64,000 nucleotides of DNA from Rebecca billardiae RCC1528 (Eukaryota > Protista > Haptophyta): NCBI GenBank assembly GCA_965240325.2, contig OZ251249.1:992001-1056000 (forward strand). The letters are read 5' to 3'. Positions 23,487-59,598 of the stretch are shown here, one piece after another. Position numbers and translations under genes: made by a program. How positions within the stretch are numbered: position 1 is the stretch's first letter; the number at the start of each line of letters is the position of its first letter. The notes beneath the pieces are model-generated. The model worked only from the letters and a program-made list of their open reading frames with translations. It was not told the origin of the DNA and made no database searches.

Positions 23487-24079
23487 GGCGGCGTGCTGGG
23501 CACGCGAGTGTTGGGCGGGATGCCACTCCAGGCGGTCCCAGTGGGTGCCTCCGTGGCGCGGCCGCAGCCCACACGCGGCGGGGTGCTGCCCTTGTCTGGA
23601 GCACGCGTCCCACCACTTGTTGGTGGCTTCGATGCCGATCTGCGACCTTCTCTACCCGGCACGGCACTGCAATACAATTGGCGAATCTTTGCCGCATAGC
23701 GGTGTAGTCTGGCCAGGATTAATAATCATGAGAGATCTGCATGCGATCTTCACATGGAAGTGTGTGTGGAATCATCATCGCAGGATTGACGAACGTACCC
23801 GCTGGTTCATTTTCCTCGAACACGGTGATACCGCGCAAAACTCTGAAGTCAGTAACGGTACCTGTGTCGTTAATTCATAGAATGGGTACAAGTACAGCAC
23901 GGCCGGTACCGTATCGCATCGATTCGGAGACGATTGCCGCGGCACTGAGAATGATGGGGTTCGATCTTTCGCCAGCCGCACAGCCCCAACACGAACGCCC
24001 GAAATGGCAGACTCACTCCTGCCGGCGGCACTGTCATCCCATGCCGCCTGCGCGGTGCCATGGCACCACCCACACAGCC

Positions 24080-26824
24080 TCAGTGGTCGAGCGCGGCGAG
24101 CTCGTCCGAGTCCCACAGCCGGTGCAGCTGCTTGCGCAGCGGGATCAGCAGCGCTGCCGGCGGCACGGGCGCGGGGAGCAGCCGGGCGGCGCGATGCGGC
24201 GGCGGGGACGAGGGGCCGCGGCGGCGCGCGGTGCGGCGCGGTGAGCTCCCGGGCGCCGCGCCGCGCGAGCCCCCCGCGGCCTACCCTGCCCTCCTCGCGC
24301 TCGGCGCGTGCGCGTGCGCGTGCGCGTGCGCGTGCGCGTGCGCGTGCGCGTGCGCGTGCGCGTGCGCGTGCGCGTGCGCGTGCGGTTGCTTTTTGCTCAC
24401 CGATGAGGAAGGGAAAGGCCACGCCCACGCCCGGCAGCCGCAGCACGACGTAGATGGCGAGCAGGCAGCCGAGCTGGAACGCGCTGAAGGAGAGCGTGGT
24501 GCGGTCGCTCACCTTGGCGAGGTAGTCGTACTGCGGCCACTCCTTCCGCTCCCAGATCCCGAAGAGGAACATGCGGTCGAAGAGCTCGTTGCCCGCCATG
24601 CTGCCCACGCCCATGAAGAGGAAGACGCCGGAGAGCACCGCCTTGGGGATCAGCCGCAGCAGCGGCGTGGCGGCGAGGGAGAGGAGGATGAGCAGGTGGA
24701 TGGCGAGCTGCGTCACGCGCTGCTCCACCACGCGCTTCGGCCGCTTCACCACCGTCTTCCCGTCCGCCAGCGTAATGAGCTCGTACTCCGTCACGGCGAG
24801 CGCGTGCGTGAGCGAGCGCACGGTCGCCGCGTGCGTGAACTGCAGCCCGACGAGCGCGAAGAGCGGGTAGATGCACACGGCGCACACCAGCAGGTCGAGG
24901 TGGTACGCGGGGGGCTTGGCGAGCTTGCGGTCCTTCCGGTTGATCAGGATCGACGTCAGGTTCTGGTCCAGGTACCCCAGCACCGTCAGCCCGAGCGCGG
25001 GCACCGCCGCGAACAGCACGCCCCACCACGGGAACGGGCGGGAGACGCCAAACGGGTTGATCAGCCAAGCGCGAGGCACCGACGGGTCGGTCGGGTCGTT
25101 GGCGGTCGGGCGGAACTCGGAGGGCACCTGCGGCGCGCGCGGCGGGCACGCGCGCGCGCGGGAGGGCAGGCCGCGTGAGCACGCCGGGCGCGCGCGTGGG
25201 CCGCGACGATGGCGGCGACGATGGCGGCGGCGGCCGCGGGGCACGCGGCCCCCGCGCGCGGCCGGCGCGCGCGCGCGCGCGCGCGCGCGCGCGGCCGCGC
25301 GCGTCGCGAAAGCGCACCTGCAAGAACGGAAGGTCGCTCACGCCGAGCGCGCCGACGAGCGCGCCGGCGGTGACGCTCGTCGCGACGATCGCGAGCGTGA
25401 CGGAGTAGTTCGCCAGCGTCGCGCGCACGCCCGGCGAGAACCAGGCCGTGGGGCGGAGGTCCTTGAGCTTGGTCGCTCCCACGTAGGTGCCCAGCCCCAG
25501 CAGCGTCGTCAGCAGCGCGGCCGTGGCGGAGAGGCGCGCGGGGTCGGCGTCGGGCAGCGTGGCGCGGACGTAGGGCGTGACGCAGATCGCGACGAGCGCG
25601 TTGACCACGAAGATCAGCGTGATCAGCGCGGAGAACGTCTCCTCCGCGAAGCGCGTCACGTGGCGCATGAGCGCGCACGAGTCTGTGAGCGCGAGCGCGA
25701 GCGTCATCAGCGCGGTCCACAGCCCCTGCCACACGCGGCACGGCATGAACTCGAGGCCGAGCGCGTTGCACAGCTGGTAGAAGACGACGGTGTACGCCAG
25801 CTCGGGGCCCGTCGCGCCGAGGATGCACAGCGGCTGCCCCGCGAACAGCGCGTAGAACACCCCGGACAGTCCGGACGAGAGGATCATCTCGACCACGCCC
25901 AGCTCGCCTCGCGTCTCCTCCTGGAAGAGCGCGCCAAACGTGATGGCGGGCGCGAGGCACGCGAAGAAGAGGAAGATGGTGGAGGAGGAGACGATGGGCA
26001 GGTTCTCGCGCTTGAACGCGTCCGTCCAGTCCGACACGTAGTACGGCGCGCGCCGCTTCAGGTCGGCGCGCAGCCCGCCTGCGAACCGGCCCGACCACTC
26101 GAGCGGGCCGAGCACGTCGGCGCCGCCGTCGCCGCCGCCGCCGTCGCCGCCGCTGTCGTCGCGGCCGAGGCCGGCCTCGAGCGCGTGCGGCGGCACGGCG
26201 ACCTCCTCGAAGGCGTGCTCCGACGACGCCTTGCTCCCCTCCTTGCTGCTCCCGTGCCGCTCGTCCCCCTCGAGTGCGGGCGTGAGCGCGAGCACCGGCG
26301 GGTGGCGCGGCGCGTGCGCAGACACGTCCTCGTCCGTGGGCAGCGCGCCGTACCCGAGCGGGCGGAGCGCGGGGCTCGTGCCCGGCGTGGAGCCGCGCGA
26401 GCGCGGGCGCGGCGCGGCGGCGACGGGCTCGCCGAGCATGCCCACGCGCGCCGCGGTCGCGCCGTCCGAGTTGGTGCGGCCTGGGCGCGCGCGCGCGAAA
26501 ACCACACCCGCGCCGCGCAGCGCGTGAGCGGGCGCACGCACAGCGCGCGCGCGGGGGCGGGGCCCGCGGGCGCGCCGCGCGCGCGCCCAGCCCGCGCCCG
26601 GCGCGCGCGGTGCGCCCCCGCTCACCGCGAAAGTTCCTGGGCGGGTACACGACGTACTCCTCGTCACCGAGCATGCCGGTCGGGCGCGAGCCCGCGGGCG
26701 CGGGGATGGGCGTGGAGCCCGAGCGGCGGCGGTCCATGCCGTCGGCGGGGAGGCCGTGGCGCGGGCGCATCACCTTGCGCCCGTCGTCCTTTGCCGCGCC
26801 GTCGTACGACTCGAGCAGGCTCAT
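24080..26824 (-). CDS. SLC4: SLC4-family bicarbonate/anion transporter (4 exons: 26824-26626, 26480-25318, 25127-24401, ~24153-24080)
   Basis: Motifs GRFAGGLRADLKRRAPYYVSDWTDA, FLFFACLAPAITFG, FAGQPLCILGATGP, TRFAEETFSALI, YLDQNLTSILIN, AYHLDL, HAATVRSLTH, VVEQRVT, IPKAVLSGVFLFMG, FPFLIALLIPLR...ELAALD. All three introns are GT-AG and in phase. Confidence 0.95.
24306..24383. repeat. (GCGTGC)n microsatellite in the last SLC4 intron
   Basis: About 13 perfect hexamer units are visible. Confidence 0.9.
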
Positions 26825-36256: not shown

Positions 36257-37043
36257 CTGACCCGGCGTTCAACGTGGTCGTCAGGTGCGCGACGGCCTTG
36301 CTCTCGCCTGCCTGAGCTGCGTGCGTCTCTGATTCCGAGTCAACTGTACCTCGTCGGCTGTCCGCCATGGCGCCGACGACCAAGCGCCTGCTCACCGGGC
36401 GCCGTGACGACGGCCGTCGGCCTCACAGCCCTCCTCCTCGCCGCCGTCGCGCTCCGCGCCCGCGCCCTCGCCCTCGCCGTGCCCCAGCAATGGGCGACAG
36501 CCTGACTTGCTATGCGCTTGTTGAAAAAGTATGGCATGCGCTCGGCGACAGGCCTTGCACGCGCGCCAGGCGGGTTCAGCTGCATGCGCTCCCGCGCGCC
36601 CGCGGCCGCGGACTCTGCGCGTCGCCGGTCGAAGACGACGAACGCACGGCGGCCGGCACTCCGGCCGTGACATTTGTGCGGTGTACGACTGTACGGGCCG
36701 ATCCCGCTCGAAATCCCGTCATCCGCCGATCGAATTCGCCAGGCGGCGGGATGGGATTTGGTCGTCGTCGTCGTCGGCTCCGATCGAGATCTCGCTCAAT
36801 CTGCCTAACAGTCGGGGCTTAGAAGATGCGCGCATCTTTGGTGCCTGGTACCAGAAAGTTACCCGCTTCGTCGGCCGTCGCCAAAGTTCGTGCCCTTCTC
36901 AAATCTTGCCCCGGCCGCGCCAACGAATAACAAGTCGAGACGAGACGGCGGCTTGCCGGTGCTTTGCACACAGCTGCTCGCGGCGGCCGTGCTGCTGCTG
37001 GCTGCTTGGGTGGCCACGCCCGGCGGGGGGCGCAGCGCACGGC

Positions 37044-40000
37044 ATGCGCAGCAGCGTCTCGGGCTCCGCGGCGGGCGGCTCGCGCGCACGCGCGGGTTCC
37101 GCCTCGGACGCGCGCCGCCCGATGGTGGCCTACCCGTCCTACACGCCGAGCGACCGCCGGCCGGCGGAGCTGCAGCCGCCCTCGCGGCGCATGCCGTCGC
37201 ACGACTACATGATGCGCTACTTCCGAGGAGGGTCGGCGCGCGCGGGGGAGGACGACGGGAGCGAGGACGAGGACGGGGACGACGATGACGACGACTACGA
37301 CAGCGGCGAGGAGGGCGGAGAGGAGTCCGACCCGAGCTCCGACGACGCGCCGCCCGCCGGCACGCCGCGCCGCGTCCGCTCGCCGCCGTTCGGCACGCGC
37401 GCCGGCACGCGCGCCGGCACGCGGCGCGCCTCGCGGAAGGAGGAGGACGCGGCGGAGGAGGAGGAGCGGCACCGGCTGCGCGCCAACCACCGCGAGCCCG
37501 AGCCGCGCGGCCGCGTGGCGAGTGGCGCGGGCAGCGCGCGCACAGCCAGCACCCGCACCTCTGGCGGCAGCGGCGGCGCCGGCGCGTCGCCGCCGCTCGC
37601 GGACCGGCGGGTGAGCCCGCAGATCAACGTGTCCGCGCCCACGCCCGAGCTGACCTCGAGGCTCGGCCGGCAGCGCGCCACCGCCGCGGGCGCCGCGCCG
37701 CCGCCGGGCGCGCTCGGCGCGCGGCGCGGCTCTCCGCTGTGGCCGGGCGCGCCGGGGCCCAGCTCAGCGCCCACCCAGCCAGGGCGCACCCAGCCCAACC
37801 AGACCGGCGGCGGCGGCGGCGGCGGCGGCGGCGCGAGGCTGAACGGCGCGCCGCCGCGCATGTGCATGCCCGCGCTCACCGTCTCGACGGAGGACCAGCT
37901 CTCGCCGCTGCCCACGCCGCCGCGCGCGGGCAGCGGGCACTCGGCCGGCTCCTCAGGCGGCGCGGGCAGCGGGCGCGCCTCGCCCGCGTGCGGCCCCAGC
38001 AGTGGGCGCGGCTCGCCGCCGCAGGCGCTGATGGGCGTGCCGATGCCGACGGGCTCGCGCAACCGCGCGCACTCGGTGGTCGCGCCGCTCGCCTCGCCCC
38101 TGCCGCCGCCGGGCTGCTCGCGCAGCCCCGCCGCGGGCAGCAGCGGCGCGGGCGGCTCCTCCTCCGCCAACTCGTCGCGCCGCGGCTCGGTGCTGCCGGG
38201 CGCGGTGGCGCGCGCCGTCTCGCCCGGCGGCGGCTCGTTCAAGGGCGGCGCGCCGCACGCCGAGCGCGCGCGGCCGGCGGCGGGGCACCCGTCGTCGGGC
38301 GAGGTGGACGTGGGCGCGATGTACCGCCGCTCGCTCCTCTCGCACGAGGAGTCGTGCGCCGCGCGCCGCGCGCAGTCGGCGCGGCTGGCGCTGCCGCGCG
38401 AGTACGAGCGCTCGGCCAACGTGAACGCGATCGCGCTCTCGGCCGACGGCTCGCGGCTGGTGGCGGGCGGCGCGGACCGGTGCTGCGCGGTGTACGACGC
38501 GCTGAGCGGCAAGCTGCTGCTCGAGCTGGCGCGCGACGAGGCCGTCGACGCGGTCGACCTCGCCGCCGACGCGTCGCTGCTCGTGCTCGGCGGGCGCGAC
38601 CGGCGCGCCGCCGTGTACGCGCTCGCCGACGGCGGCGCGCGCGGCTCGTCGCTGCTGTGCGAGGTCGAGCGCGAGGGGCTGGTGTGGGCGGTGGCGCTCG
38701 CGCCGGACACGTCGACGTTCGCGGTGGGCGGGCGGGACCACGCGGCGGCGGTGTACGACGCGCGCTCGGGCGCGCTCCTCTTCGAGGCGCGGCGCGGCAA
38801 CATGGTGACCTCGGTCGCCTACTCGCCCGACGGCGCGCGGCTCGCGGTGGGCGGGTACGACAAGTGCGTGTGCGTGGTCGACGCGCTGAGCGGCAACCAC
38901 GTCTTCACGATCGCGCGCGCCGAGACGGTGATGAACGTGGCGTTCCACCCGGACGGGCTGACGCTCGCCGCGGTGGGGCGCGACCACAAGGTGGCCATCA
39001 TGGACGCGATCACGGGCGCGCACCTCTTCCAGATGGAGCGCAAGGGCACGGTGTACGGCCTCGCGTACAGCGCGGACGGCACCTCGCTCGCGGTCGGCGG
39101 GCGCGCGGCGATCGCGGCCGTGTTCGACGCGCAGACGGGCGAGCTGCTGGGCGAGATGGCGCGGCCGTCGGTGATCGCGTCGATGGCGTTCTCGGCGGAC
39201 GGCTCGCGCCTCGCCGTCGCGGGCCACGGGCGCAAGTTTGCGGTGCTCGACACCACCACCACCGGCCGGCTCTCCGAGGTCGATCAGGCGGGGCGCACGT
39301 GGTCGGTCGCCGCCACCGCGGACGTGTCGAGGCTCGCGGTGGGCGGCGTCGACCGCAAGGCGGAGGTGTACGACGTGGCGTCGGGCGAGGTGCTCTTCGA
39401 GCTGCGCCGCGCGGACGTGGTCACCGCCATCGCCTTCTCCGACGACGCGTCGCAGCTCGCCGTCGCCGGGCACGACAACTGCGTCGCCGTCTACTCGGCG
39501 CGCACCGGGCTGCTCGAGTTCGAGGCGGTGCGCGGGGGGCACGTCTGGGCGGTGGCGTTTGCGCGCGACGGCGGGCGGCTCGCGGCGGGCGGCGTGGACA
39601 ACCGCGCGGCGGTGCTCGACGCGTCGTCGGGCGAGCTGCTGCTCGAGATCGAGCGGCCGGACGCGGTGCGCGCGCTCGCGTGGTCCGCGGACGGCGCGCA
39701 CCTCGCGCTCGGCGGCTTCGACAAGACGGCCTCGGTGTACGACGCGGCGTCGGGGCTGCCGCTGTTCGAGGTGCGGCGCGGCGACGTGGTGCTCTCCGTC
39801 TGCTTCGCGGCGCACGGCGGCGCGCTCGCGATCGGCGGGGACGACCACTCGGCGGCGGTGCTGGCGATGCCCACCGGGCGCGTGCTGTACGAGGTGCGCC
39901 GCGCCGAGGCGCTCCGCTCCGTCGCCTTCTCGCACGACGGCGCCAAGCTCGCGATCGGCGGCGAGGACAAGACGTGCGCGGTCGTGGACGCGCGCACGGG

Positions 40001-42953
40001 CGCGCCGCGCTACGCGGTCACGCGCGCCGAGACGGTGATCGCCGTCGTCTTCTCGGCGGACGACACGCGGCTGGTGCTCGGGCTGCGCGAGAAGGAGATC
40101 CAGGCGGCCGTGCTGAACGCGGCCACGGGCGAGCTGCTGTTTGAGGTCTCAAGGCTGCCGTGGGTCGTCGACCTCGCGTTCGCGACGCCGGGCGCGCCGC
40201 GGCCGCTCGCGCGCCGGCGCGAGCAGATGGGGCCCGTGTTCGACGCGGCGTCGGGCGGGCTGCTGCTCGAGGCGGTGCGGCGCACGGACGACGAGGTGCT
40301 GATGGCCGCCTTCTCCGCCGACGGCGCGTGCCTCGCCGTGCACGAGACGCACACCAAGGCGCGCAAGCCCGGCTCGGGCGCGGCGCTGCTCGCGCGCTCG
40401 GTCGGGCCGGCGGGCTCGCGCCGGCTCGACCTGACGCGGCAGGCGTCGCGGCAGGACCTGTGGCGCCACGTGTCGCGGATGATGCTCGGGCCGCAGCCGG
40501 GCGGCGCGGCCGCGGCGTCGGCGCTCGCGGCGGACACCAACCCGCGCAACGTGCACGCCGTCTCCTTCCACCTCGCGCGCATGGCCGGCACGGTCGACGC
40601 CGCGTCGATGCACACGCTCGCGGAGTCGCTCGTCGTGCGCGGCTGGCACGCGCTGCTCGAGCGCATCGTCGGGCACGACCCGCAGTCCTCGTGGCTCGCG
40701 GTGGACGAGGGCGCGTTCGAGCTCGCGCTCCGCCTCTTCGACACGCGCGCGCTCGCGCTGCTCTTTGACGCGGCGCTGCACCCCAACGCGCCGCGCCGCG
40801 TGCAGACGCGGCTCGCCGCCTCGCGCGCGCTGCTCGCGCTGCTGCGCACGGGCGGGCACGGCTCGCTCGCCGGCCGCGTGATCGCGTGCTGCGGCTGGCA
40901 GCGCGTGGGCGAGACGCTGCGCGCGAACGGGCAGACGTCCGACGTGCTCCGCCGCCCGCTCGGCCGCATGTCCAACTCGGCCTCGCCCTTTGTCGTGTGG
41001 AGGCCCAACGTCGCGTCGCTGCCCGACGGCGCGCCCGCGGTCGCGCAGCTGATCCCGCTGCCGTGCCTCGGCTGCGCGCCGATGCTGCGCGCGCTGCTGC
41101 TGCACGGCGCGGGCGAGGACGGGCTGTGGGGCTGCGAGGCGCTCGGCTCGGTGCTCGACGCGCTGTGGTCGCAGCACTTCATGAAGTTCCACTGGCTCAC
41201 GTGCGCGCTGCTCTGCGTCGAGGTCGGCTGCTTCTGCGGCCTCTGCCTCGCGTACGCGCACGCGGCGCAGATGGCGTCGGAGGAGGACGCGCACACGATC
41301 GCGCCCGCGGCCGCGCTCGCCGCCGCGGCGCACGGCGGGCTGGAGGCGTGGCTCTTCGGCCTCGCGCTCTTCTTCTCGGCGATCGAGGTGCGCCAGCTCA
41401 CGCGCTCGCGCCGCTGGGGCCGCGCGCCGCGCAACGCCGACCTCGCCGCCGCGTCCGAGTTTGCGCCCGCGCTCGCGGCGATCGGCGCGCGCCACTCGCG
41501 CGCGCTGGCGGGCGCCGCGCGGCTCGGCTCGCGGCTCGTCTCGTGGGACGTGCTCGACTGGCTGGCGCAGCTCTCGGTGCTCTTCTCGCTCGGCTGCGCG
41601 CGCGCGCTCCCCGCCGACTCGGCCGTGATCGTGCACGCCATGACCGCCACCGCGCTCTGCCTGCTCGGCAAGACGGTGAACGCGGCGCGCGGCTTCCGCG
41701 TGCTCGCGCACCCGGTCGAGATCCTGCTGCAGTCGACGGTCGACATGCTGCCGCTGCTCTTCATCTGCCTGGCGCTCGTCTTCTTCTTCGCGCTGGGCAT
41801 GCTGCTCCAGTTCTCGCCCGCGCGGCGCTCGGGCGAGCCGATGGCCGAGACCGCCGCGCAGCTCTCCGACCCGCACTGGTTCCTGCTCGGAGCGTTTGAC
41901 GTCTCGATGCTGGGCGAGTGGGGGCCGGACGAGCTGAGCGCGTTTGGGCAGGCGGCGAGCGCGCCCGTCACGGCGCTGCTCTTCGTGCTGCTCGTGGTCA
42001 TCGTGACGATCATCGCGCTGAACACGCTGATCGCGCTGCTCGCCGACACGTTCGAGCGCGTGCAGGACCGCTCGCGCGCCACGCGCACGCGCCAGCTCTC
42101 CGGCATGATCGTCGAGTGGAACGACATCCTGCCCGCGGCGATGGTGGCGGCGATCGAGGAGGCGAGCGTGTGGACGCACCGGCTGATGCCCGAGTCGATG
42201 CTGGCGGAGGACGGGCTCGGCGCGTCGGCGGAGGGGTGGCAGGGGCGCACCGCGCGGCTGGTCGGCGCGCTGCGCACCTCGCTCGAGCACGAGCTGCAGC
42301 ACATGCGCGCCGGCCTCGAGGCCTCGCACGAGCAGACGCTCAAGGCGGAGCTCGAGCGCTCGCGCAAGGCGATGGCGGCCGAGCTCGAGCGCGCGCTGGA
42401 CAAGCACGCCGCGCGCCGCGAGAAGGGCGGCGGCGGCGGCGGCTCGCCCACGGCGGGCGCGCGCGACCCGGAGCGCTCGGCCGCGCCCACGCCGCACGCC
42501 GCGCACGCGCGCTCGCGCGCCTCCGCCAGCCCGCGCGCCGGCCGCAGCCGCAAGGCCTCGCGCGCCGGCAGCCGCGCGCCCTCGGGCCGCGGCTCGCCCA
42601 ACCGCGCGGGCTCGCCGCCGCACACGCCGAGGCGCGCGTCCGTGCACGCCGTCAGCACGGCCGCCGCGCTGCCGCCGCCCGTGCTCGGCGCGGCGGGCGC
42701 GGCGCCGCCGGGCGGCGCCGCCGCCGGCGCGCCGCCCCGCCGCGCGACGCTCGAGATGCCCGTCGTCGACTCGAAGGGGCGCGTGCTGCCGAGCGGCGCG
42801 GCGGCGGCGGGCGCGGGGGCGGCGGCGGCGGCCGCGCCGCCGCCGCCGCCCGCGCCCGTCGGCGGGCTGATGCTGACGAGCCAGCAGCACGGCCCGGCGC
42901 AGCCGCAGCAGCCGCGGCTGCCGCACTCGCAGCGGGAGAGCGCGGGCGCCTGA
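37044..42953 (+). CDS. Intronless WD40-repeat + TRP-like 6-TM cation channel (~1970 aa; start could be a downstream ATG)
   Basis: About 14 regular and 2 degenerate WD40 repeats (VxxVAFSxDGxxLAVGGxDxxxxVYD) at ~38410-40350. Pre-S1 motif SVLDALW, TM helices, pore FDVSMLGEW, and S6/TRP helix IIALNTLIALLADTFERVQ. A coiled coil follows. Confidence 0.9.
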   Translation: MRSSVSGSAAGGSRARAGSASDARRPMVAYPSYTPSDRRPAELQPPSRRMPSHDYMMRYFRGGSARAGEDDGSEDEDGDDDDDDYDSGEEGGEESDPSSDDAPPAGTPRRVRSPPFGTRAGTRAGTRRASRKEEDAAEEEERHRLRANHREPEPRGRVASGAGSARTASTRTSGGSGGAGASPPLADRRVSPQINVSAPTPELTSRLGRQRATAAGAAPPPGALGARRGSPLWPGAPGPSSAPTQPGRTQPNQTGGGGGGGGGARLNGAPPRMCMPALTVSTEDQLSPLPTPPRAGSGHSAGSSGGAGSGRASPACGPSSGRGSPPQALMGVPMPTGSRNRAHSVVAPLASPLPPPGCSRSPAAGSSGAGGSSSANSSRRGSVLPGAVARAVSPGGGSFKGGAPHAERARPAAGHPSSGEVDVGAMYRRSLLSHEESCAARRAQSARLALPREYERSANVNAIALSADGSRLVAGGADRCCAVYDALSGKLLLELARDEAVDAVDLAADASLLVLGGRDRRAAVYALADGGARGSSLLCEVEREGLVWAVALAPDTSTFAVGGRDHAAAVYDARSGALLFEARRGNMVTSVAYSPDGARLAVGGYDKCVCVVDALSGNHVFTIARAETVMNVAFHPDGLTLAAVGRDHKVAIMDAITGAHLFQMERKGTVYGLAYSADGTSLAVGGRAAIAAVFDAQTGELLGEMARPSVIASMAFSADGSRLAVAGHGRKFAVLDTTTTGRLSEVDQAGRTWSVAATADVSRLAVGGVDRKAEVYDVASGEVLFELRRADVVTAIAFSDDASQLAVAGHDNCVAVYSARTGLLEFEAVRGGHVWAVAFARDGGRLAAGGVDNRAAVLDASSGELLLEIERPDAVRALAWSADGAHLALGGFDKTASVYDAASGLPLFEVRRGDVVLSVCFAAHGGALAIGGDDHSAAVLAMPTGRVLYEVRRAEALRSVAFSHDGAKLAIGGEDKTCAVVDARTGAPRYAVTRAETVIAVVFSADDTRLVLGLREKEIQAAVLNAATGELLFEVSRLPWVVDLAFATPGAPRPLARRREQMGPVFDAASGGLLLEAVRRTDDEVLMAAFSADGACLAVHETHTKARKPGSGAALLARSVGPAGSRRLDLTRQASRQDLWRHVSRMMLGPQPGGAAAASALAADTNPRNVHAVSFHLARMAGTVDAASMHTLAESLVVRGWHALLERIVGHDPQSSWLAVDEGAFELALRLFDTRALALLFDAALHPNAPRRVQTRLAASRALLALLRTGGHGSLAGRVIACCGWQRVGETLRANGQTSDVLRRPLGRMSNSASPFVVWRPNVASLPDGAPAVAQLIPLPCLGCAPMLRALLLHGAGEDGLWGCEALGSVLDALWSQHFMKFHWLTCALLCVEVGCFCGLCLAYAHAAQMASEEDAHTIAPAAALAAAAHGGLEAWLFGLALFFSAIEVRQLTRSRRWGRAPRNADLAAASEFAPALAAIGARHSRALAGAARLGSRLVSWDVLDWLAQLSVLFSLGCARALPADSAVIVHAMTATALCLLGKTVNAARGFRVLAHPVEILLQSTVDMLPLLFICLALVFFFALGMLLQFSPARRSGEPMAETAAQLSDPHWFLLGAFDVSMLGEWGPDELSAFGQAASAPVTALLFVLLVVIVTIIALNTLIALLADTFERVQDRSRATRTRQLSGMIVEWNDILPAAMVAAIEEASVWTHRLMPESMLAEDGLGASAEGWQGRTARLVGALRTSLEHELQHMRAGLEASHEQTLKAELERSRKAMAAELERALDKHAARREKGGGGGGSPTAGARDPERSAAPTPHAAHARSRASASPRAGRSRKASRAGSRAPSGRGSPNRAGSPPHTPRRASVHAVSTAAALPPPVLGAAGAAPPGGAAAGAPPRRATLEMPVVDSKGRVLPSGAAAAGAGAAAAAAPPPPPAPVGGLMLTSQQHGPAQPQQPRLPHSQRESAGA

Positions 42954-44373: not shown

Positions 44374-44406
44374 CAAGGAGTCTTTAAAAACCCACAAGAC
44401 TCCTTG
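44374..44406. mobile_element. 33-bp remnant (excision footprint or minimal deletion derivative) of the P-like element family
   Basis: TCTGAAC|CAAGGAGTCTTTAAAAACCCAC-AAGACTCCTTG|TCTGAAC: a 7-bp TSD flanking 22 nt + 11 nt of the TIRs seen at 53488 and 54851. Confidence 0.9.
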
Positions 44407-46680: not shown

Positions 46681-49600
46681 CACAGCGCAAGATTTCGGAA
46701 AAGATGTCGTTACGGGCCCCCCCCTGCACCCGCCCGCTCGCGGAAATTCAGCATGGCGACGCGCGGCGCGCTGAAGGGCGGGGAGCGTGCGCGCGCAGTC
46801 CCAGACTACCCCGACGAATTTCCCCGAGCGTCTCCCCATCGATCCAAGACACCCCGCCCTGCCCACAGCTCGAGATCGGAACAGGTGCAGTTGAGGTCGC
46901 GTGCCGCGCGGGCGGCTCGGGCGCCAGTGCGCACCTTTTTTTATGGATGGCCACAGAACACCCTTCTTCCTCGGTGAGGAGGCCATGCACGGCAGCCACA
47001 GGTGCGTATGCATTCGACTGAAGCCTGATCCGCAGCCGGCTGCTGCTCCGAGCACGCACGCCGCTCGAGTTTGGAGCTGCGCGGCAAGCACTTCTACTCC
47101 GAGGCGATGATGCCAGGCGTGTGGGGTCAGATCACTGCGATGGCGCGCGAGGAGGGCGGCGACTAGGCGTCGCCGCCCGGCGATAACGGCGGAAGTTGTT
47201 GCGGCCCCGCCTCTCGCGGCCCCGCCTGCAGCACTCCGCTTACGGCGTTCGTGTCCGCCGCCCAGATCGAGCCCTCAGAGCGGATGCGGCTCGACGCCTC
47301 ACACGGCGGGTGCAACCTGCAGCGCCGCCCCGCATGACCCAGCTGCCCGCGCGGCAGCTGCCGAGACCACGTGCCCGCGGCTCGACCCCTCCGTGTTGAC
47401 CGCCGTCGTGTCACTACCGCCGCCTGGCCGTGCCGACTGCCCGCTGCTCTCACCCTTCCACCTCCCTGCTGCCCGTGCAAGCCGGAGCTCGCCACCAGCT
47501 GCCCGCACTCGTCGACGAGACGCCGATCGCTGGCCCGGCCCATTGCTCATCGCCCGCCGCCCGCACGTCCGCGCCGCGGCGCCCGCCGCACGGCACGCAG
47601 CTCTCGGCGGCAAGCATTGCTGCCGTGGACGGCAGCGCCGACCTGCTCGCGATCCACGTTGCCGAACTGTCGGAGGCGAACGTGCGCAAGAGCTGCGAGC
47701 TGAGCGCCGTGCCGAGACTCGAGAAGCAGCTGCACGCGGAGCGCGCTGCAGCAGCCGAACGGACGGCGGCGGCCGCCGAGACGATGGCTGCACTTAGGGT
47801 GCTGCTCGGCGTGGCCGAGGCCAAGTGGCGCGCAGCCTCGGCCGATGCCGCCGCGAGCAAGCCTGCTCGGCAAACCGCTGCGTTCGCGCTTGCCGCTGCT
47901 GCTCGGCGTGAGGCGCGCGCGCACGTGGCCGAGCGCGCTGCCGCGCGCGAGGAAGGCGCGGAGGAGCTTGGGCGGCTCGAAGCGGACCTGGCTACTGCGC
48001 ACGAGGTGACACGTGCGGCGTGCGGGCGCGCGTCCCAGGCGCGTGCAAGCTCGAGCTCGCGCGCGAAGAACTTGGCGCCAAGCCTCCGCGCACGAGAGCG
48101 CGGCGGAGGCGGTGGCGGCGGTGCGGCGCACGAGCAGCGAGCAGCCGCGCCATCCAGTCGGACGAGCAGTGATGAAGTGCTTCAAAGCTCGGAGTCAGAT
48201 TCACCGTTCACGTCGGTCACGGCCTGCCACGCAGCTGTCGGACTGAGTCCCGGTCCCGGTCATCGTCCGGCGCTGAGTCGTGACTCGCGGCAGCAGCCGC
48301 GCCCGGCGGTGCGGCGCGGTCAGCCCGCGGCGGCCCGCGCGGCTCACTGGTAGCAGTCGCCTGACCAAGTTAGAGTCGTGTTATTATCGACCAGTAGGAC
48401 CGTACGTCGTGAGAGTCATCGCGGAGGCTGCTGAGTCAGCTGCGCCCGACCCGCTCCGCGCCTCCGGTCAGCCTCCGCGCCCGCTGCCGCCTCCGCCGCG
48501 GGGCCGGCCGATCGTCGGGCGGTCAGCCGCGTAGTCCGCGATGAAACTCGACGTCCAACGGCCAACCGGTCCGCGCGCGAGTAACCGCCAAACCCGCCGG
48601 TCAAGTCGTAGTGTGAGCCGTGCTGACTGCGTGACGCCGCGGCCGGGCCCGGGCGCGCGGGTGCCAGTAGCTATACTATAGATACTAGCTAGGCCCCGGG
48701 TGCCAGTAGCTACTGGCACCCGGGCGGTAGCTACTGGCACCCGCGCCACCGGTGACCCGCCCTGCCGCGGCCGCGGCCGCTCGGCCATTGTGACCCGGCG
48801 GCGAGTGAGAGTCCCCGTAGTCAGCTCTCATGATGGCCTCACGCGAGGATCGCGCCGGTACGGACCGCTGCGACGACTGGTGGCGCGCGCCGACTTCTGT
48901 CTGTCTCGTGCAGCGAGCGAGCCGCGGCGCCGGCGGCAGCGGCGGCAGCCGTCGCGCCGCCGACTGCTGCGCTGGCTGCTGCTGCGGCGGCGGAGCTTCA
49001 ACGGCGGCGAGCCGCGCGGCCCGCGCGGTCCGGGCACAGAGCGGCTGAGCTGTGACACGGGATGCCGGACCGTCCCGCCGAGCGGCAACGGTCGTCACGG
49101 GCTGCACGTTGGGCTCGGACACGGCCGTGGTGAGGTTGACGAGAGCAAGTACGACCTCGCCGTTGTGCATGAACTTGAGCGAGATGACCGCGCTGAACGA
49201 GCAGACCAAGTCTGTTCGGCACGCCTCGCAGCGTGCGTCGAGGCCGAGGAAGGCTGGGTTCTCAGGAACGGTACTGCAGGCGACGGTGCACACCGAGCGG
49301 ACGTTCTGCTCCACCACCTCCATACCGCCGAGCGCGACGAACTCGGGCGCACACAGTGCCTCGCGCAGGAACGCAGCAGTCAAGCCGCTTCGGCCCCTGC
49401 CGGTCACGTCGCCGAGTCACGCCGCAGCCGCTCATGAATCTTGCGCACCTGCGCGACGAAGAGGGCGGCGCTGCACGCGGACATGCAGATAGCGAGGAGC
49501 GCGACGTGCAACGCGTTCATCGCCGTCGCCAGAGCGCTACCAGACCCACACATCGCCTGCCATGCCGCCTCGACCGCCTCGCGCGAGCTCCACAAACAGT

Positions 49601-51804: not shown

Positions 51805-52077
51805 GCTGGTGTCGATTAAAAGGACACGACGAGCAGGCGGGGTACTTACTTTACGAAAAAGAAGCGCTCGACGCGCTCCCTATTATAATACTGCCGCGAG
51901 GCGGCCGCAGCCAAGGGCGGTAGGTACCGCAGCCCTCGTCCAGGCCTCGCAGGCGGACAGCTGAACGAATTTTTCCGGCGGCGCTACCATCGGCGACGGC
52001 TTCATGCGGGCGGTGACAGTTGGCGGGCGTCAATCTCGCCTGCCTGAGCTGTGTGCGTCTCTTATTCTTAGTAAACT

Positions 52078-53195
52078 GCAGTCATGTTGAAGCACCCCCC
52101 CCATGTCCTTCTTTCTGTGGGGGGGGGGGGTGCACCCTGCTCGAAGGGCTGATGGGCAGCAGGGGGGGGGGGGGGGGGGCAACCTGCTCAAGCTCAGGCT
52201 GGCGGGCTGCAGGGGGGGGGGGGGGGGGGGGGGGGGGGGGTGCTCGCACCCCGATTGAGCAGGCCCATTGGGTGCTGCGGCAGGCGCGCGCCGCGGGCCC
52301 GGGCAGGCCGTCGCAGTGCAGGAAGTGGTCCCAGAGCTCTGCAGAGCGCGCCTGCGGCGCAATGACTGGCCTTCATAGCAGTAGTCTTCATCACCCATCC
52401 GCCATCTCATGATATCCGCCTAAGCGGGGGCCATCGCGCCGAGCGCACCGCGCGTGACTCGTGTCGGCGCGGCCGACCGTGACGTCTACGGACTGCTCGG
52501 ATTCGGACGCTCGTCACTCCCAACTGGGAATCGGCCGCCGACTGCACGAGCGGCACCCTGCCTAGGGCGGTCGGCGCGTCGCTGCTCGCGACGCACCTAC
52601 TCCGAAGCAGACGCCCCTCGCCGGCCCGCAAGCTCGGCCACCATGCCACCGCGTGGCGAGCGCAACCGGTTGCGCTCTGGGCTGACCAAGCCAGCAACCG
52701 GGACGGCGGCGCGGACGCCGCGCCACCGCGTCCGCCTGCCGTCGCGGTTGGATTGAGCACGGACCGTAGCACGAAGGCACGTGGCGTGCCAGCGCGCTGC
52801 CAGCCCACCAGCGCTCTCCGTTGCACGTACGCGCACAACGCACGCTTGGCCGGGCGCCGGGGGCCGTGGGGGAATCCAGCGCCGCCATCGTCTCGCTCGA
52901 TCAGAGCGCGCGCCTTCGGCTATGCTGTCCTCATAGAAAGCACGCCAAAAAGGGCCAAAAAATTTCTTCGCCTCGGGCCTGCGGGGCCCCGGGGGAGGCC
53001 CCCCGGACCCCCCGCTGTGGGTCCGGGGGCTGGCGCCCCCGGACTTCCGGTGCAGGGGGGGGGGGGGGGGGGGGGCTACCACCTCGGGGCCGGCGCCAGA
53101 CGCTGCAGGGGGGGGGGGGGGAGTTGCAACCTGATCAGACTCAGAAGGCCCCACAGATGAAGGACACAGTGGCAGGGTTACAACATCATGACTGC
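52078..53195. mobile_element. 1.1-kb non-autonomous TIR element with an 8-bp TSD (hAT/Mutator-like; superfamily undetermined), containing poly-G tracts
   Basis: TIRs GCAGTCATGTTG and CAACATCATGACTGC. The left TSD AGTAAACT is at 52070-52077. The right TSD is split: AGTA at 53196-53199 and the complete AGTAAACT at 59509-59516. Confidence 0.7.
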
Positions 53196-53449
53196 AGTAT
53201 TCTGTATTACCGTCCGGTAGATCCGATCGGGTACAGGGGTTGCCTGGGGCCGCAGACGTCACGGGGGGCGGGCGGCAAGGCAGCGCACGCCCAAAGACTC
53301 ACTAAAGAGGCGCAGCGTCAGGTGCCCACGACGGCATGGGCGGCGTCGGCCGGCGCGGTCCCCAGAGACGCTGCGCCCTGCCACCGGGCTGGCCCCCGAA
53401 CGCACGCTGTCAGCGCCAAGCGCGTGTCACGTCGGTCAGGGGGCGGCTC

Positions 53450-55543
53450 CCGGGAAGTAAGTGCAAGGCGCGGGCCCCGCACCCAACCAAGGAGTCTTTA
53501 AAACCCCACTGGGGAGGAAGGCAAGTGGACCCATGTTCTTGTACGCCGCGGTTCCAGAGTCCGCGGTGCTTTGGAAGCCTGGTCACAGCAGTGGCTTTTA
53601 TTTGTCCGGAGATCGTTCAGAATAGGCGTTTCGGCTAGAAAATCACCACTGAAGCCTGCGAAATCACCGGACTTCAGAACCGCGGCGTACACGGATATCC
53701 CAACTGCAACAGATAGGATCTGATCCTATGGCATAGGATGAGTTCACCAGAGCGCCAGCGGCTCAGTTTTGCGCATACGATCATCGGTGTTGCTATATCG
53801 TACACACAACTCCACCGGCTGTCGACACACACCATCTCCGCCTGCCGCCACTGCCACGGCGGTCGCGCGCGCGCGCGCGCGACCGCGCGCGCGCGCGCGA
53901 TCCTATGCCATAGGATCCGCGCCAGGGACGGCTACATAGGATCGGCATGACAGCGTCAGTTGCTCGCCCCTGGCAGCCGAGCGGCGACCCTGGGCACGGA
54001 CGGCGCCGGCGGGTGCTCGCACCGGATGCCCGCGCTGCCGCCCGCACCGCCGCCCACGCCGCCAGGCGCGTTGCTGCCCGTGGCACACCGATTCTGGGGC
54101 GGGGCGAAGAGAGGGCAACCGCCATCGTGCGTGCGGCCACGGACCTCCCACGATGGTGGCGGCCGTCCTTGTGGACCACGAGCCCACGAATCCAAGAGCG
54201 TGCGGGTCGAGCGTCGCGTAAATCGACTGCGGCACACGCATGGCGTGTCCACAGGTGCGATACCATCCACGCACGCGGCATGGCAAGATGTTCCGGCGGC
54301 TACTTCCGAGGCTTGCTCTACATGCGCGCCGATGCTCGATCGCAACCACCTGACGACGCGACCGACCCGCAGCGGCTTGCGCGCGCAGCCCCGCGGCGTG
54401 ACGTACAATGCCGGCGAGGACCAAAACGCATTGTGGATGAACCTCGTACGGCTCCGGTCGAACACAGTGAACCACGATGTGTGAGCATCAAGCTGGGTGT
54501 CATCTACAAGTGCCACATGTCGGTCGGCGTTGCCGCCGTGGAGTCGCAAGGCGGCAGCGACCGCGACGGCTTCACGCGCTCCATCCGTGGAGCCCAAAAC
54601 ATGCGGTGGTGGTCGAAAATCACAACAAGCTCGCTCTGGCGGATGGTGGCGACACTGCTACCGACCCCTAGGTGCAGTCGTACCATTCAGCAACATGAGA
54701 AAATGTCGTCTGCTGAGTCGTCCCTGGGGCCATCCTATGCCATAGGATTGAATCCTATGGCAGATAGGATCGCAGTGGGATATCCGTACAGAACATGGGA
54801 CCGAGCTCGCACTGGGGGCTTCCTCCCCAGTGGGTTTTTAAAGACTCCTTGACCCAACGGCCCGCCCCCGTAATCTCGGGCGCGGGAAGCCCCGGGAACA
54901 CCCGAAACGCCACAGCAGAGCGCCGAACCGAGTTGGTGCCCACGCCCTTTGTGGCGAGCCCCAGCGCGCGGCACTCAACGCGCAGCCACGCCAGGCCACG
55001 CCGAATACGTGACGGCGCGCCCAGCGTCGTCGACAAACAGCGGCGCCGCGGAGGCGGTGGGAGGCCGATGCGCGAGGTAAGCCGCCACCGCACGAACCGG
55101 GCAGAGCGGCGAGTCCGAGATGGAGGGGAGCAGCAGCTCCCAAGCCTCTTCACCAGGGTGGTGCTTCCAATTTCGCACGAGGATGTACAGGCCGCGCGGC
55201 GAGGAGGAGACGTCGCAGCCGCGCAAAAGCTTCCACGGCGCCCAGCGAGACGCCGAACCGGACACCACCGTCTCCGATCGCACCACCGTGAAAAGCTGTA
55301 CCAGCAGCATCGCGAAGAAGTGCGTTGTCTCAGAGCGAGTGCGGGCCGCCGCCGCGAGCACCGCCGGCGACAGCGCGACCGGACGGGCACGCTCCCGCCC
55401 GCCCGTTTGGCGAGTAGCCCGGTGCCACGAGGTGGCTGCGGGCCCCGACATCCGCAATCCGGGCGGCCAGGTCCGACCGGCGAGCTGAGCCGCCACCAGT
55501 GCACAGCGGAGACGTACTGCTCGATGGAGCCCGCGGCGTAACC
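53450..55543 (-). pseudogene. DIRS-type tyrosine recombinase, frameshifted and interrupted by the P-like element
   Basis: YAAGSIEQYVSAVHWW (N-terminal SAM-like domain); FFAMLLVQLFTVVRSETVV (catalytic R); ILVRNWK; LCPVRAVAAYLAHRP...PLF; TNSVRRSAV (HxxR box, H>N); GRW at the insertion point. Confidence 0.8.
53488..54851. mobile_element. P-superfamily-like non-autonomous DNA transposon, 1364 bp
   Basis: 33-bp TIR CAAGGAGTCTTTAAAA(C/A)CCCACTGGGGAGGAAG (fits CANRG). 7-bp TSD ACCCAAC at 53481-53487 and 54852-54858. Repeated subterminal ATCCTATG(G/C)CATAGGAT palindromes. Confidence 0.88.
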
Positions 55544-55632
55544 CGCTTCACACCGAGATGCAACGCGAACCGCTATCAGATCACCAGTCCTGAGATCACA
55601 TCCTGAGATCAGATCACAATGATCTGATCTCA

Positions 55633-56921
55633 CCACCCGTTCCAGAAAGGCGATTCGTTCGGACATGGTCCGGGAGCTGATACGGTCGTGACACGACCGT
55701 ATCAGCGCCCGGACCACAGTGGGAGCACGCGGGGGGCCGCGGCAGTTGAGAAGGGGCGGGGGCGGGCGGGCGACGTCGACGTCGCGGCGATCCACGCGCT
55801 CTGCTGTCGAGGAGTTGCTGTTTGCGCCGCGCGCCGCGCTGGCGGGGCGGCCGGGACCCACGCGCGCCTTCGAACCCCCGGCGCCCGCGTGCTCATCGGC
55901 TTCCTCCGCCTGCGAGTAGCCCACGACCGCGCCCGCCGCGCTCTTTGAGTGGGTTGACCGCGCCCGAGCCTGCTCGCCGCCGAGCGCAGGGATGAGTTGA
56001 GCACGGCGCGAGGCGGCGATCGCGATCGGGCGATCGCATGAGCCCATTTGGGCCCCATCTGCCACGGCGCGACCGCTTCAGAATGCGTATGTGACCCCAC
56101 TTGTCATGGATGTCGGGTAGCGGGCGAGCACTGTTGGCCAGCGTGTCCGCGCGCGCCGCGCCTGTGCAGGGCCAGACGGGTCGGAAACACATCACAGTTG
56201 GCATCAGGACATGCTGATTACCGTGTATTGCCCAGCGTGGGCCAGCAAGGGCATGACCTTCACTGCTCTGCCAGCTCGCAACGTGCGTCAATGCTGACGG
56301 CAACTCTGGTCGCCAGAAGAACTTGCTTGAGTTCTCGTCGCGAACACGGCAGGCGTCGCATAACTACAGATGCGGACCAATCGTGCCAGCCAGTTTGCGT
56401 AGTGCAGACATCACGAGACGCCACGGAGCGGCATCCGACCCGTATAGCCTTGCGCGAGCGCGCGCGCGCGCGCGGACATGCTGGCCGACAGTGCTCACCT
56501 GCTACCCGACATGAGACAACCATGACATGTGGGGTCACATACGCATGCTGAAGCGGTCGCGCCGTGGCAGATGGGGCCCAAATGGGCTCATGCGATCGCC
56601 CGACCGCCATCGCCGCCTCGCGCCGTGCTCAACTCATCCCTGCGCTCGGCGGCGAGCAGGCTCGGGCGCGGTCAACCCACTCAAAGAGCGCGGCGGGCGC
56701 GGTCGTGGGCTACTCGCAGGCGGAGGAAGCCGATGAGCACGCGGGCGCCGGGGGTTCGAAGGCGCGCATGGGTCCCGGCCGCCCCGCCAGCGCGGCGCGC
56801 GGCGCCCAAGTCACGTATATCTCGGGCCGCACGTCGGCCACGCGCCACTTGATCGCCATCCTGCCGCCACGAGCCGGGTGCGGGGCGCCTGGAGGCGGAA
56901 CAACACCCCGTGGACGGGTGG
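55633..56921. repeat. Foldback cassette copy 1 (X-A-L-A'-Y), 1.29 kb
   Basis: Terminal IR CCACCCGTTCCA / TGGACGGGTGG. Internal ~340-bp inverted arms (55824-~56156 and ~56461-56805) surround a ~300-bp loop. Confidence 0.85.
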
Positions 56922-57012
56922 CATGGTGTCGTTAAATCATATATAGAATGAGTACGGGTAAGTAGGTAACCAGGTTGAGAACAATGGAATTGATGAGGAT
57001 GGTCCTTGAGGA

Positions 57013-58072
57013 CCGAGGCCGCTCGAGCGACTTCGTGTCAGGCGAGGCAGATCGCGCCAGTGCGAGGCGAGGCAGACGCTCGCCTGCCTCGCCCAGCAGG
57101 CGAGGCAGCTAAGCTAGTAAAGCCGCGGCCGAACTTTACGAAAGCCAAATGTCTGCCGGTGCGCCGCCCGTCTTTTGCGCACGGTGACAAGGGCGCGCGA
57201 GGGCGCTTCCTCACGATCCCGAAGAGCGCTGCGCGCGGCGTCGCGTTGGCGGCGGCAGCGGCGCTGGGGTGTATCTTGCCCATTCTGCGTGGCGGTGCAC
57301 GCTCATGACGCCTCGGCCGCCGCCACGCCATGCGCGACCGGGCGTGTCGCCTTCTTGACGGGCAGTGCACACGCCCTTGCAAGCGCACAGCCGTGAAGAG
57401 CCGAGAGCGTCCGTCGCGCGCACGCCGCCCACGCGGGATGAGGTTTCAGGACTATTCGTATGACACTGAGCGATCGCGCTCTGGCATGTGCGAGCCGTGA
57501 TGACCATGGGTAGCAACTACGATGACCACTGCTCACCTGCATTTCAGCCGATGACATCCTCTCGTTCAGCGATCTTGACTGCTCTGAACGCATGGCGAAC
57601 TCGGCGGAGCGCATGGGGAAGGTGGCTTCGTTGATAACACAAAGCATCCCGCGTGGGCGGCGTGCGCGCGACGGACGCTCTCGGCTCTTCACGGCTGTGC
57701 GCTTGCAAGGGCGTGTGCACTGCCCGTCAAGAAGGCGACACGCCCGGTCGCGCATGGCGTGGCGGCGGCCGAGGCGTCATGAGCGTGCACCGCCACGCAG
57801 AATGGGCAAGATACACCCCAGCGCCGCTGCCGCCGCCAACGCGACGCCGCGCGCAGCGCTCTTCGGGATCGTGAGGAAGCGCCCTCGCGCGCCCTTGTCA
57901 CCGTGCGCAAAAGACGGGCGGCGCACCGGCAGACATTTGGCTTTCGTAAAGTTCGGCCGCGGCTTTACTAGCTTAGCTGCCTCGCCTGCTGGGCGAGGCA
58001 GGCGAGCGTCTGCCTCGCCTCGCACTGGCGCGATCTGCCTCGCCTGACACGAAGTCGCTCGAGCGGCCTCGG
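57013..58072. repeat. 428-bp apparently perfect inverted repeat (57013-57440 / 57645-58072) with a 204-bp spacer
   Basis: Opposite-strand ORFs 57175..57396(+) and 57689..57910(-) translate identically. The boundaries were read directly. Confidence 0.92.
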
Positions 58073-58091
58073 ACCGAGGAGCCCAAGACAT

Positions 58092-59386
58092 CCACCCGTT
58101 CCACGAGGTGTTGTTCCGCCTCCAAGGCGCCCCGCACCCGGCTCGTGGCGGCAGGATGGCGATCAAGTGGCGCGTGGCCGACGTGCGGCCCGAGAGAAAC
58201 GTGACTTGGGCGCCGCGCGCCGCGCTGGTGGGGTGGCCTGGACCCATGCGCGCCTTCGAACCCCCGTCGACCGCGCGCGCATCGGCTTCCTCCGCCTGCG
58301 AGTCGCCCGCGACCGCGCCCGCCGCCCGCTTGGAGTGGGTTGACCGCGCCCGAGCCTGCTCGCCGCCGAGCGCAGGGATGAGTTGAGCGCGGCGCGAGGC
58401 GGCGATCGTGGTCGGGCGATCGCATGCGCCCATATGGGCCCCATCTGCCACGGCGCGACCGCTTCAGCATGCGTATGTGACGCCACTTGTCATGGTTGTC
58501 TCATGTCGCGTAGCAGGTGAGCACTGTCGGCCAGCGTGTCCGCGCGCGCGCGCGCCTGAGCAGGGCCAGACGGGTCTGAAACACGTCACAGTTGGCACCA
58601 GGGCATGCTGATTGCCGTGTATTGCCCAGCGTGGGTCACCAAGGGCATGCCCTTCACTGCACTGCCAGCTCGCAACGTGCGTCAATGCTGACGGCAACTC
58701 CGGTCGAGAAGAACTTGCTTGAGTTCTCGTCGCGAACACGGCATCAGCAGACGCCACATGACTACGGATGCGGACCACTCGTGCCACCCAGTTTGCGCAG
58801 TGCAGACATCACGAGACGCCACAGAGCGGCATCCGACCCGCAGAGCCCTGCGCGCGCGCGCGCGCGCGGACACGCTGGCCGACAGTGCTCACCTGCTACC
58901 CGACATGAGACAGCCATGACAAGTGGGGTCACATACGCATGCTGAAGCGGTCGCGCCGTGGCAGATGGGGCCCATATGGGCGCATGCGATCGCCCGACCA
59001 CGATCGCCGCCTCGCGCCGCGCTCAACTCATCCCTGCGCTCGGCGGCGAGCAGGCTCGGGCGCGGTCAACCCACTCCAAGCGGGCGGCGGGCGCGGTCGC
59101 GGGCGACTCGCAGGCGGAGGAAGCCGATGCGCGCGCGGTCGCCGGGGGTTCGAAGGCGCGCATGGGTCCAGGCCACACCGCCAGCGCGGCGCGCGGCGCA
59201 AACAGCAACTCCTCGACAGCAGAGCGCGTAGACCGCCTCGACGTCGACGTCGCCCGCCCGCCCCCGCCCCTCTCAACGGCCGCGGCCCCGCGTGCGCTCA
59301 CTGTGGTCCGGGAGGGGTTTAGGTCGTCCACGACCTAAACCCCTCCCGGACCGTGTCCGAACTAATCGCCTTTCTGGAACGGGTGG
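58092..59386. repeat. Foldback cassette copy 2 (Y'-A-L-A'-X'), 1.29 kb
   Basis: Terminal IR CCACCCGTTCCA / TGGAACGGGTGG. The flanks are inverted relative to copy 1, but the loop is in the same orientation. Confidence 0.85.
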
Positions 59387-59598
59387 CTTGAACACGCTGC
59401 ACTCATCTCAGTGGTCAGACAATTCATCAGTATGGGTAGTTCCGTCAATCACGCCTTACTTTATCATAGATCGCAGGTCCTACCTGCGTCGTTAAATCAT
59501 ATAGAATGAGTAAACTGTACATCTATGTTTCAACGACACTTGATTTTAAGGCGTGATTGACGCCACGACAGTACCCGCGTGGCCGTGTCGCCTTCCTT

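Follow-up and report, generated by a model that had tools for sequence, protein, structure and literature searches.

In a 64-kb stretch of contig OZ251249.1 from the haptophyte Rebecca billardiae RCC1528 (positions 992,001 to 1,056,000, referred to below as the window), we analyzed two inverted copies of a non-coding element, here called the cassette, which occur as isomers with the internal loop in opposite orientations relative to the cassette ends. In each copy the two long inverted arms that flank this loop resemble each other more closely than they resemble the arms of the other copy. The cassette is probably a non-autonomous element with terminal inverted repeats (TIRs) whose arms are subject to gene conversion or template switching by the host, with occasional inversion of the loop. 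A first-pass annotation of the same DNA had described a mobile-element-like family with two loop isomers and homogenized arms, a description that our analysis supports. Its further suggestion that an adjacent tyrosine recombinase (YR) acts on the cassettes did not hold up: a truncation, frameshifts and a P-like insertion have left the YR broken, and recombinase-type sites did not occur in the arms above chance.

Anatomy of the cassettes

The structure of the cassettes was checked by self-BLAST, repeat finding and segment alignments, and the positions of all features are compiled in Table 1. Self-BLAST and the segment alignments confirmed two cassettes of ~1.29 kb with the previously noted order X-A-L-A'-Y in copy 1 and Y'-A-L-A'-X' in copy 2. 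In each cassette, internal inverted arms of ~335 bp flank the loop L of ~250-300 bp. Ends X (90%) and Y (97.6%) aligned between the copies in inverted orientation only, while L aligned in direct orientation only, with ~90% identity including its ragged ends and 18 substitutions in the ~250-bp core, compared to 56%, the noise level, in the opposite orientation. L is therefore inverted relative to its own flanks, as had been proposed. In copy 1, a degenerate inner extension of arm A that reaches to position 56185 stays with L.

The inverted-repeat ends described earlier for both cassettes were found as an exact terminal 12-mer at three of the four ends (chance 0.22), the fourth, the Y end of copy 1, having the 12-mer with a 1-nt deletion. 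Homology between the copies ends at these 12-mers on both sides, and apart from them X and Y are unrelated to each other (47% in a forced alignment). Copy 1 is flanked by CA on either side, a 2-bp repeat that would occur by chance in 1 of 16 cases and whose left member is possibly filler, and the flanks of copy 2 (CAT and CTT) include no exact target-site duplication (TSD). With no consistent TSD at the two copies, we assign the cassette to no superfamily.

The longest stop-free stretch in the cassette comprises 169 codons, and the loops of the two copies differ by a 2-bp indel and exhibit no third-position bias. Ten stop-free frames of at least 114 amino acids from the cassette, the central foldback and the P-like element (both described below) had no match in Pfam, and an Rfam search was likewise without a match. 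Exact-pattern scans of viral, metagenome and prokaryotic contigs as well as blastn searches of plasmids and phages yielded no further cassette copies. A set of 64 viral matches to a degenerate 17-mer was attributed to chance, since no similarity extended beyond the 17-mer itself.

The cassettes had also been regarded as parts of a single 3.75-kb palindrome around a perfect central inverted repeat. The central repeat is indeed perfect, with 426-bp arms that are 100% identical, but the whole is not one unit: the loops read in the same direction, and the center is a separate insertion with its own 5-bp duplication (GGACC on each side). This foldback has GAGG termini and a 9-bp subterminal motif that occurs four times, its long inverted repeats reach the ends of the element as in Galileo/FB-type foldbacks, and self-BLAST detected no sequence that it has in common with the cassettes. 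Without it the cassettes are spaced 109 bp apart. A single macro-element spanning the whole 3.75 kb was considered and rejected, as no TSD was found for it; the apparent palindrome consists of two inverted cassette copies and a younger foldback insertion. Judged by the divergence of their arms, the foldback (0%) would be the youngest insertion, followed by copy 2 (1.8%) and copy 1 (2.8%).

Table 1. Positions of the cassettes, their segments and the adjoining features in the window
Feature	Position	Strand	Remarks
Cassette copy 1 (X-A-L-A'-Y)	55633..56921	+	1289 bp, non-coding, 12-bp TIR
X end, copy 1	55633..55823	+	unique, 191 bp, bears terminal 12-mer
X hairpin, copy 1	55667..55715	+	23-bp stem, one mismatch, z -7.9
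Arm A, X side, copy 1	55824..~56156	+	private 7-bp deletion
Loop L, copy 1	~56157..56465	+	includes ~25-bp degenerate inner arm extensions; core 57% GC
Arm A', Y side, copy 1	~56460..56805	-	
Y end, copy 1	56806..56921	+	unique, 116 bp
Cassette copy 2 (Y'-A-L-A'-X' on +)	58092..59386	-	1295 bp, both 12-mers exact
Y' end, copy 2	58092..58209		
Arm A, Y side, copy 2	58210..58555	+	
Loop L, copy 2	~58556..58853	+	orientation as in copy 1, so inverted relative to own X/Y ends
Arm A', X side, copy 2	58854..59199	-	
X' end, copy 2	59200..59386		
X hairpin, copy 2	59305..59352	-	perfect 23-bp stem, z -9.7
Central foldback, independent young insertion	57015..58070	.	arms 57015-57440 and 57645-58070; spacer 204 bp
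P-like non-autonomous element	53488..54851	.	CAAG termini, 33-bp TIR, 7-bp TSD ACCCAAC
Dead YR fragment, by sequence of a DIRS-order retrotransposon	54852..55574	-	N-terminus missing, interrupted at 54851
GATC-rich patchwork	55575..55632	.	58 bp, joins truncated YR to cassette 1
Histidine kinase gene	start 59626		

Concerted change of the arms and of the X hairpin

Across the 334 columns of the arms proper, 14 columns grouped the arms by copy, while none grouped them by X/Y side and none by L side. Two of these columns (218 and 225) correspond to the diagnostic bases from which homogenization of the arms within each copy had first been proposed, and the complete set bears this out. The arms differ at 9 and 6 positions within the copies and at 19-24 of ~330 positions between them, and identity between the two arms of a copy is uninterrupted for stretches of 159 and 214 bp. 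In 20,000 simulation runs without homogenization, the number of copy-grouping columns never exceeded 4. The inner arm ends, ~25 bp of degenerate sequence in a (GC)n tract, move together with L, which places the inversion point inside the homogenized arms or at their outer edge. Inter-copy crossovers were considered as a source of the flip, but worked through on paper they either leave L symmetric or yield X..X and Y..Y products; since they cannot yield the observed pattern, the flip took place within the element.

A second instance of symmetric change, which adds to what the first-pass annotation had observed, is provided by a hairpin 34 bp from the cassette terminus in the X end. Between the copies, 5 of 7 adjacent base pairs of the stem are altered on both sides, with 17 pairs unaltered, and five such compensatory changes would have a probability of ~1.5e-5 if they had arisen as independent point changes. 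Both loop isomers have thus evolved concertedly within copies at two scales, with symmetric arm-to-arm change in the long arms as well as in the hairpin of one and the same element. Templating of the hairpin block of copy 1 from the flank was also considered, but was not significant (p~0.06). The variable block of the copy 2 hairpin (59315-59323 and 59334-59342) resembles a permutation of the TTTAGGG telomere repeat and is the sole such occurrence in the window, a post hoc observation that is possibly due to chance.

Origin of the two isomers

In the explanation that we favor, the cassette would be a non-coding, DNA-transposon-like element in which 12-bp TIRs and unique ends enclose a long inverted duplication. 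Its two copies would have inserted in inverted orientation ~110 bp apart, as part of a nest that overlies a dead YR retrotransposon, with the foldback landing between them later. Because the inverted arms are only ~300 bp apart in each copy, each arm could template the other by gene conversion or polymerase template switching, via a cruciform or a folded single strand. Such templating would keep the arms within a copy alike and would also have copied the altered block across the X hairpin, and L would invert, be it at this locus or in master copies prior to their insertion, whenever an event resolves as a crossover or an inter-strand switch, with no need for a recombinase encoded by the element. 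We infer that the flipping was the work of a homology-based process of the host and, from the existence of two copies with TIRs, that the cassette represents a transposon family. When a polymerase switches templates between inverted repeats, arms are known to be homogenized and spacers inverted (PMC8604942, PMC5453318), and compensatory clusters also result (PMC5453318); Y-chromosome palindromes undergo arm-to-arm conversion and rare inversion (PMC3723533), and Galileo copies exhibit extension and conversion of their TIRs (PMC3573991).

Several points weigh against this explanation. Only two copies were studied, no autonomous partner was seen and a consistent TSD is lacking (CA/CA for copy 1, none for copy 2), for which reason transposon status and superfamily are matters of inference. 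Most published cases of template switching involve far shorter repeats, whose arms measure tens of bp and are separated by a few bp, and the palindromes of Y chromosomes are far larger. In addition, all 14 diagnostic sites are located in the outer 225 of the 334 columns (p~0.004, post hoc). This distribution hints that the inner arm is under a constraint for which neutral conversion does not account.

An unlikely though not negligible alternative is that flip/flop is inherent in replication via a folded single-stranded DNA (ssDNA) intermediate of the HUH/rolling-circle or rolling-hairpin kind, in which every transposition would re-make one arm using the other as template, the X hairpin acting as a structure-specific origin or terminator. 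The complete lack of shared ancestral arm differences would be expected if the arms were reset at every insertion, but continuous conversion likewise predicts their loss. The subterminal hairpin retains its structure while its sequence changes, and a consistent TSD is absent as it is for HUH transposons (10.1101/2022.12.15.520654), whereas the cassette ends, symmetric CC..GG inverted repeats of 12 bp with unrelated flanks, differ from both the terminal direct repeats of Replitrons and the TC..CTRR ends of Helitrons and lack a T-rich or AT target. None of the open reading frames (ORFs) scanned was recognized as a Rep gene. The loop of 250-300 bp is also far larger than the loops of parvoviral flip/flop ends. 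We regard a eukaryotic non-autonomous family that is copied via folded ssDNA, with flip/flop isomers as an obligate by-product and a structure-only hairpin as origin, as an unlikely reading; if true, it would represent a mode of transposition not described for chromosomal TIR elements, and obligate 1:1 isomers among fresh insertions genome-wide would point to undescribed hairpin-primed transposition in eukaryotes. Similarly unlikely is a nested composite, in which A-L-A' would be a long-TIR foldback within a ~305-bp host element made up of X and Y, either inserted twice at one target in opposite orientations or excised and put back in flipped form by its transposase. The long TIRs of one transposon copy would naturally be near-identical, a GCGC palindrome present at either arm end might represent a 4-bp TSD, and the divergence of Y (2.4%) is below that of A and L (6-7%; p 0.02-0.06); furthermore, the column data do not discriminate between a crossover within A and a flip of A-L-A' in its entirety. 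However, the GC/CG-rich ends give many such apparent TSDs at many offsets, none of them diagnostic, a double insertion at the same base demands strict targeting, and the X hairpin, which lies outside A, exhibits the same concerted change.

Still less likely is an assembly phasing error in the orientation of L in one copy. The 159-bp and 214-bp runs of within-copy arm identity do exceed short-read k-mers, but the sequence contains no N and resolves the 426-bp perfect inverted repeat with its duplication, poly-G tracts and 14 phased copy-specific sites, suggesting that long reads were used, and foldback chimeras would yield identical arms instead of arms with 2-7% divergence. Least probable of all, and very unlikely in our view, is the involvement of a tyrosine recombinase, be it from the local gene when intact or from a copy acting in trans, that inverts L at an arm site in the manner of Flp or mobilizes the cassette in the manner of a Crypton. 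The YR sequence is only 58 bp away and the 12-bp TIRs have the length of a YR binding site (PMC3212892), but the YR is dead and apparently truncated at the very junction that adjoins the cassette, and its relatives are retrotransposons linked to a reverse transcriptase (RT), with no foldback in those of their contigs that were inspected. A Flp/Cre-type site, defined by a 6-8-bp core with an inverted binding element of 11-13 bp on either side, was sought in each arm, and the best candidates scored 9-10 of 12 matches, no better than the best of shuffled sequences, which reach 9-11 in 80% of cases; an intact cognate recombinase was not found locally. Cryptons are characterized by 4-6-bp terminal direct repeats and the absence of TIRs (PMC3212892), whereas the cassettes have TIRs and lack direct repeats of 4-6 bp at their termini.

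The recombinase remnant and the insertion nest

The first-pass annotation had placed the cassettes next to a tyrosine recombinase, and YR sequence does indeed lie 58 bp from copy 1, but as a broken fragment and not as an intact gene. Searches with the YR used its stop-free pieces one by one. Three frame segments were recognized by tblastn, with frame shifts near 55550, 55460 and 55000, and the first ~50-58 residues are missing, homology stopping at ~55574. The stop-free piece at 54978-55496 (-) matched 22 representatives, several of them with Phage_integrase domains, and the fragment is 40-47% identical to metagenomic YRs. The best full-length relative (P0102) aligns at 6e-16 to a match with a Phage_integrase domain and is encoded downstream of an RT-RNaseH gene in its contig (L002). 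Judged by these sequence similarities, the YR is that of a DIRS-order retrotransposon, and its motifs suggest that this is probably Ngaro-like. DIRS and Ngaro elements combine RT-RNaseH with a YR and have inverted terminal repeats with an internal complementary region or split direct repeats (PMC6681497). No RT was found in the 64-kb window, the contigs of the YR relatives contain neither foldbacks nor long inverted repeats, and the cassettes were not placed among these elements. Scans for YR-related loci were empty.

Sequence errors could account for the frame shifts taken by themselves, but not for the truncation and the insertion, and the YR is in a decayed state. TNSVRR in place of HxxR is no sign of this decay, since the relatives have the similar variants TTSIRR and TNSLRR. 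A C-T-Y beyond the P-like insertion was rejected as the catalytic tyrosine, because it coincides with the GCACTTAC motif, which is located downstream of the stop in the relatives. This short motif (GCACTTAC..CTGACC) occurs downstream of the YR both in the window (~53440-53470, -) and in two contigs of relatives (L003 and L004) and may mark a 3' repeat of the retrotransposon. The role that fits the YR best is that of the ground on which an insertion nest landed, and not that of the engine driving it.

The P-like element (1.36 kb) is inserted in the YR directly after GRWV. A 33-bp minimal derivative of this type with its own 7-bp duplication (TCTGAAC) is present at 44374-44406. The P-like element contains, nested at its left end, an inverted-repeat element of ~142 bp (53545-53686) with GTAC on both sides. 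The palindrome ATCCTATG(G/C)CATAGGAT also recurs within the P-like element, at 53720-53740, 53897-53916 and 54729-54770, and possibly represents the ends of yet another nested element or its binding sites. The patchwork between the truncated YR and cassette 1 consists of short direct and inverted duplications, with a perfect 13-bp hairpin at the end adjoining the cassette, and by resemblance is possibly templated repair filler at a deletion junction.

Genomic setting

The window has a GC content of 75%, contains no N and encodes eukaryotic genes for RCC1 repeats, an SLC4 bicarbonate transporter, a protein kinase, a WD40-ion channel protein, a CDP-alcohol transferase and a histidine kinase. The surroundings of the cassettes (52-59.6 kb) are intergenic, lower in GC and composed of nested repeats, with several insertions that have both TIRs and TSDs. 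The SLC4 bicarbonate transporter domain (23775-26667, -) is spread over two overlapping frames, by an intron or a frameshift, and the best relatives of the protein are 53-59% identical. A single ORF of 2140 amino acids (36531-42953) joins WD40 propellers to an ion-transport domain, and no close relative was found in a search limited to proteins of similar length.

Additional small repeats include a 34-bp repeat (94%) at two intergenic sites (36302-36335 and 52034-52067), a lone perfect 15-bp palindrome inside a short repeated motif (48686-48733), and poly-G-containing units of ~50 bp (52119-52240 and 53040-53144) that are in tandem at one site and loosely repeated ~900 bp away. An AT-rich motif of ~27-40 bp is present in three direct copies (23859-23900, 56926-56955 and 59481-59539) and a partial inverted copy (59524-59539), and the central foldback and cassette 2 lie between two of its copies. 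This motif may be a small repeat family, a long duplication or a promoter-like motif.

Comparison with known systems

With TIRs at the ends of homology and no intact coding capacity, the cassettes have features of non-autonomous TIR transposons, and they behave like a foldback or palindrome that evolves in concert. Their relation to DIRS-order YR retrotransposons is limited to the neighboring YR fragment, which is a broken 3' fragment only and of which the cassettes are not part. Like the Flp/FRT system of the 2-micron plasmid and parvoviral ends, the cassettes form two isomers around homogeneous inverted repeats; unlike these, they are chromosomal and non-coding, their loop measures hundreds of bp, and no recombinase site, active recombinase, Rep or capsid gene was seen. 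Chloroplast genomes flip-flop as well, with homogenized inverted repeats and a spacer in two orientations. Arms that are closer within than between copies, compensatory hairpin blocks and a spacer found both ways are likewise known from template switching and from conversion in Y palindromes (PMC8604942, PMC5453318, PMC3723533), from which, as from chloroplast genomes, the cassettes differ in their intermediate scale (335-bp arms and a 300-bp spacer) and in their location inside a repeated element. Similarity to Galileo 2RT, FB and Tetris elements lies in being non-coding and TIR-bounded, with long inverted arms that are made or extended from internal sequence and undergo conversion (PMC3573991). 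In contrast to these elements, the long arms of the cassette are internal and separated from the 12-bp terminal repeats by unrelated ends of 191 and 116 bp, a covarying hairpin is present at one end, and neither a 7-bp TSD nor an autonomous partner was seen. If our favored explanation is correct, the cassettes would provide a quantifiable case of concerted evolution and spacer inversion in a small algal transposon, of use when repeats are annotated and when exchange between arms is to be measured at the 300-bp scale; they would not constitute a new system, but an unusual architecture that was probably shaped by the same processes as these known examples.

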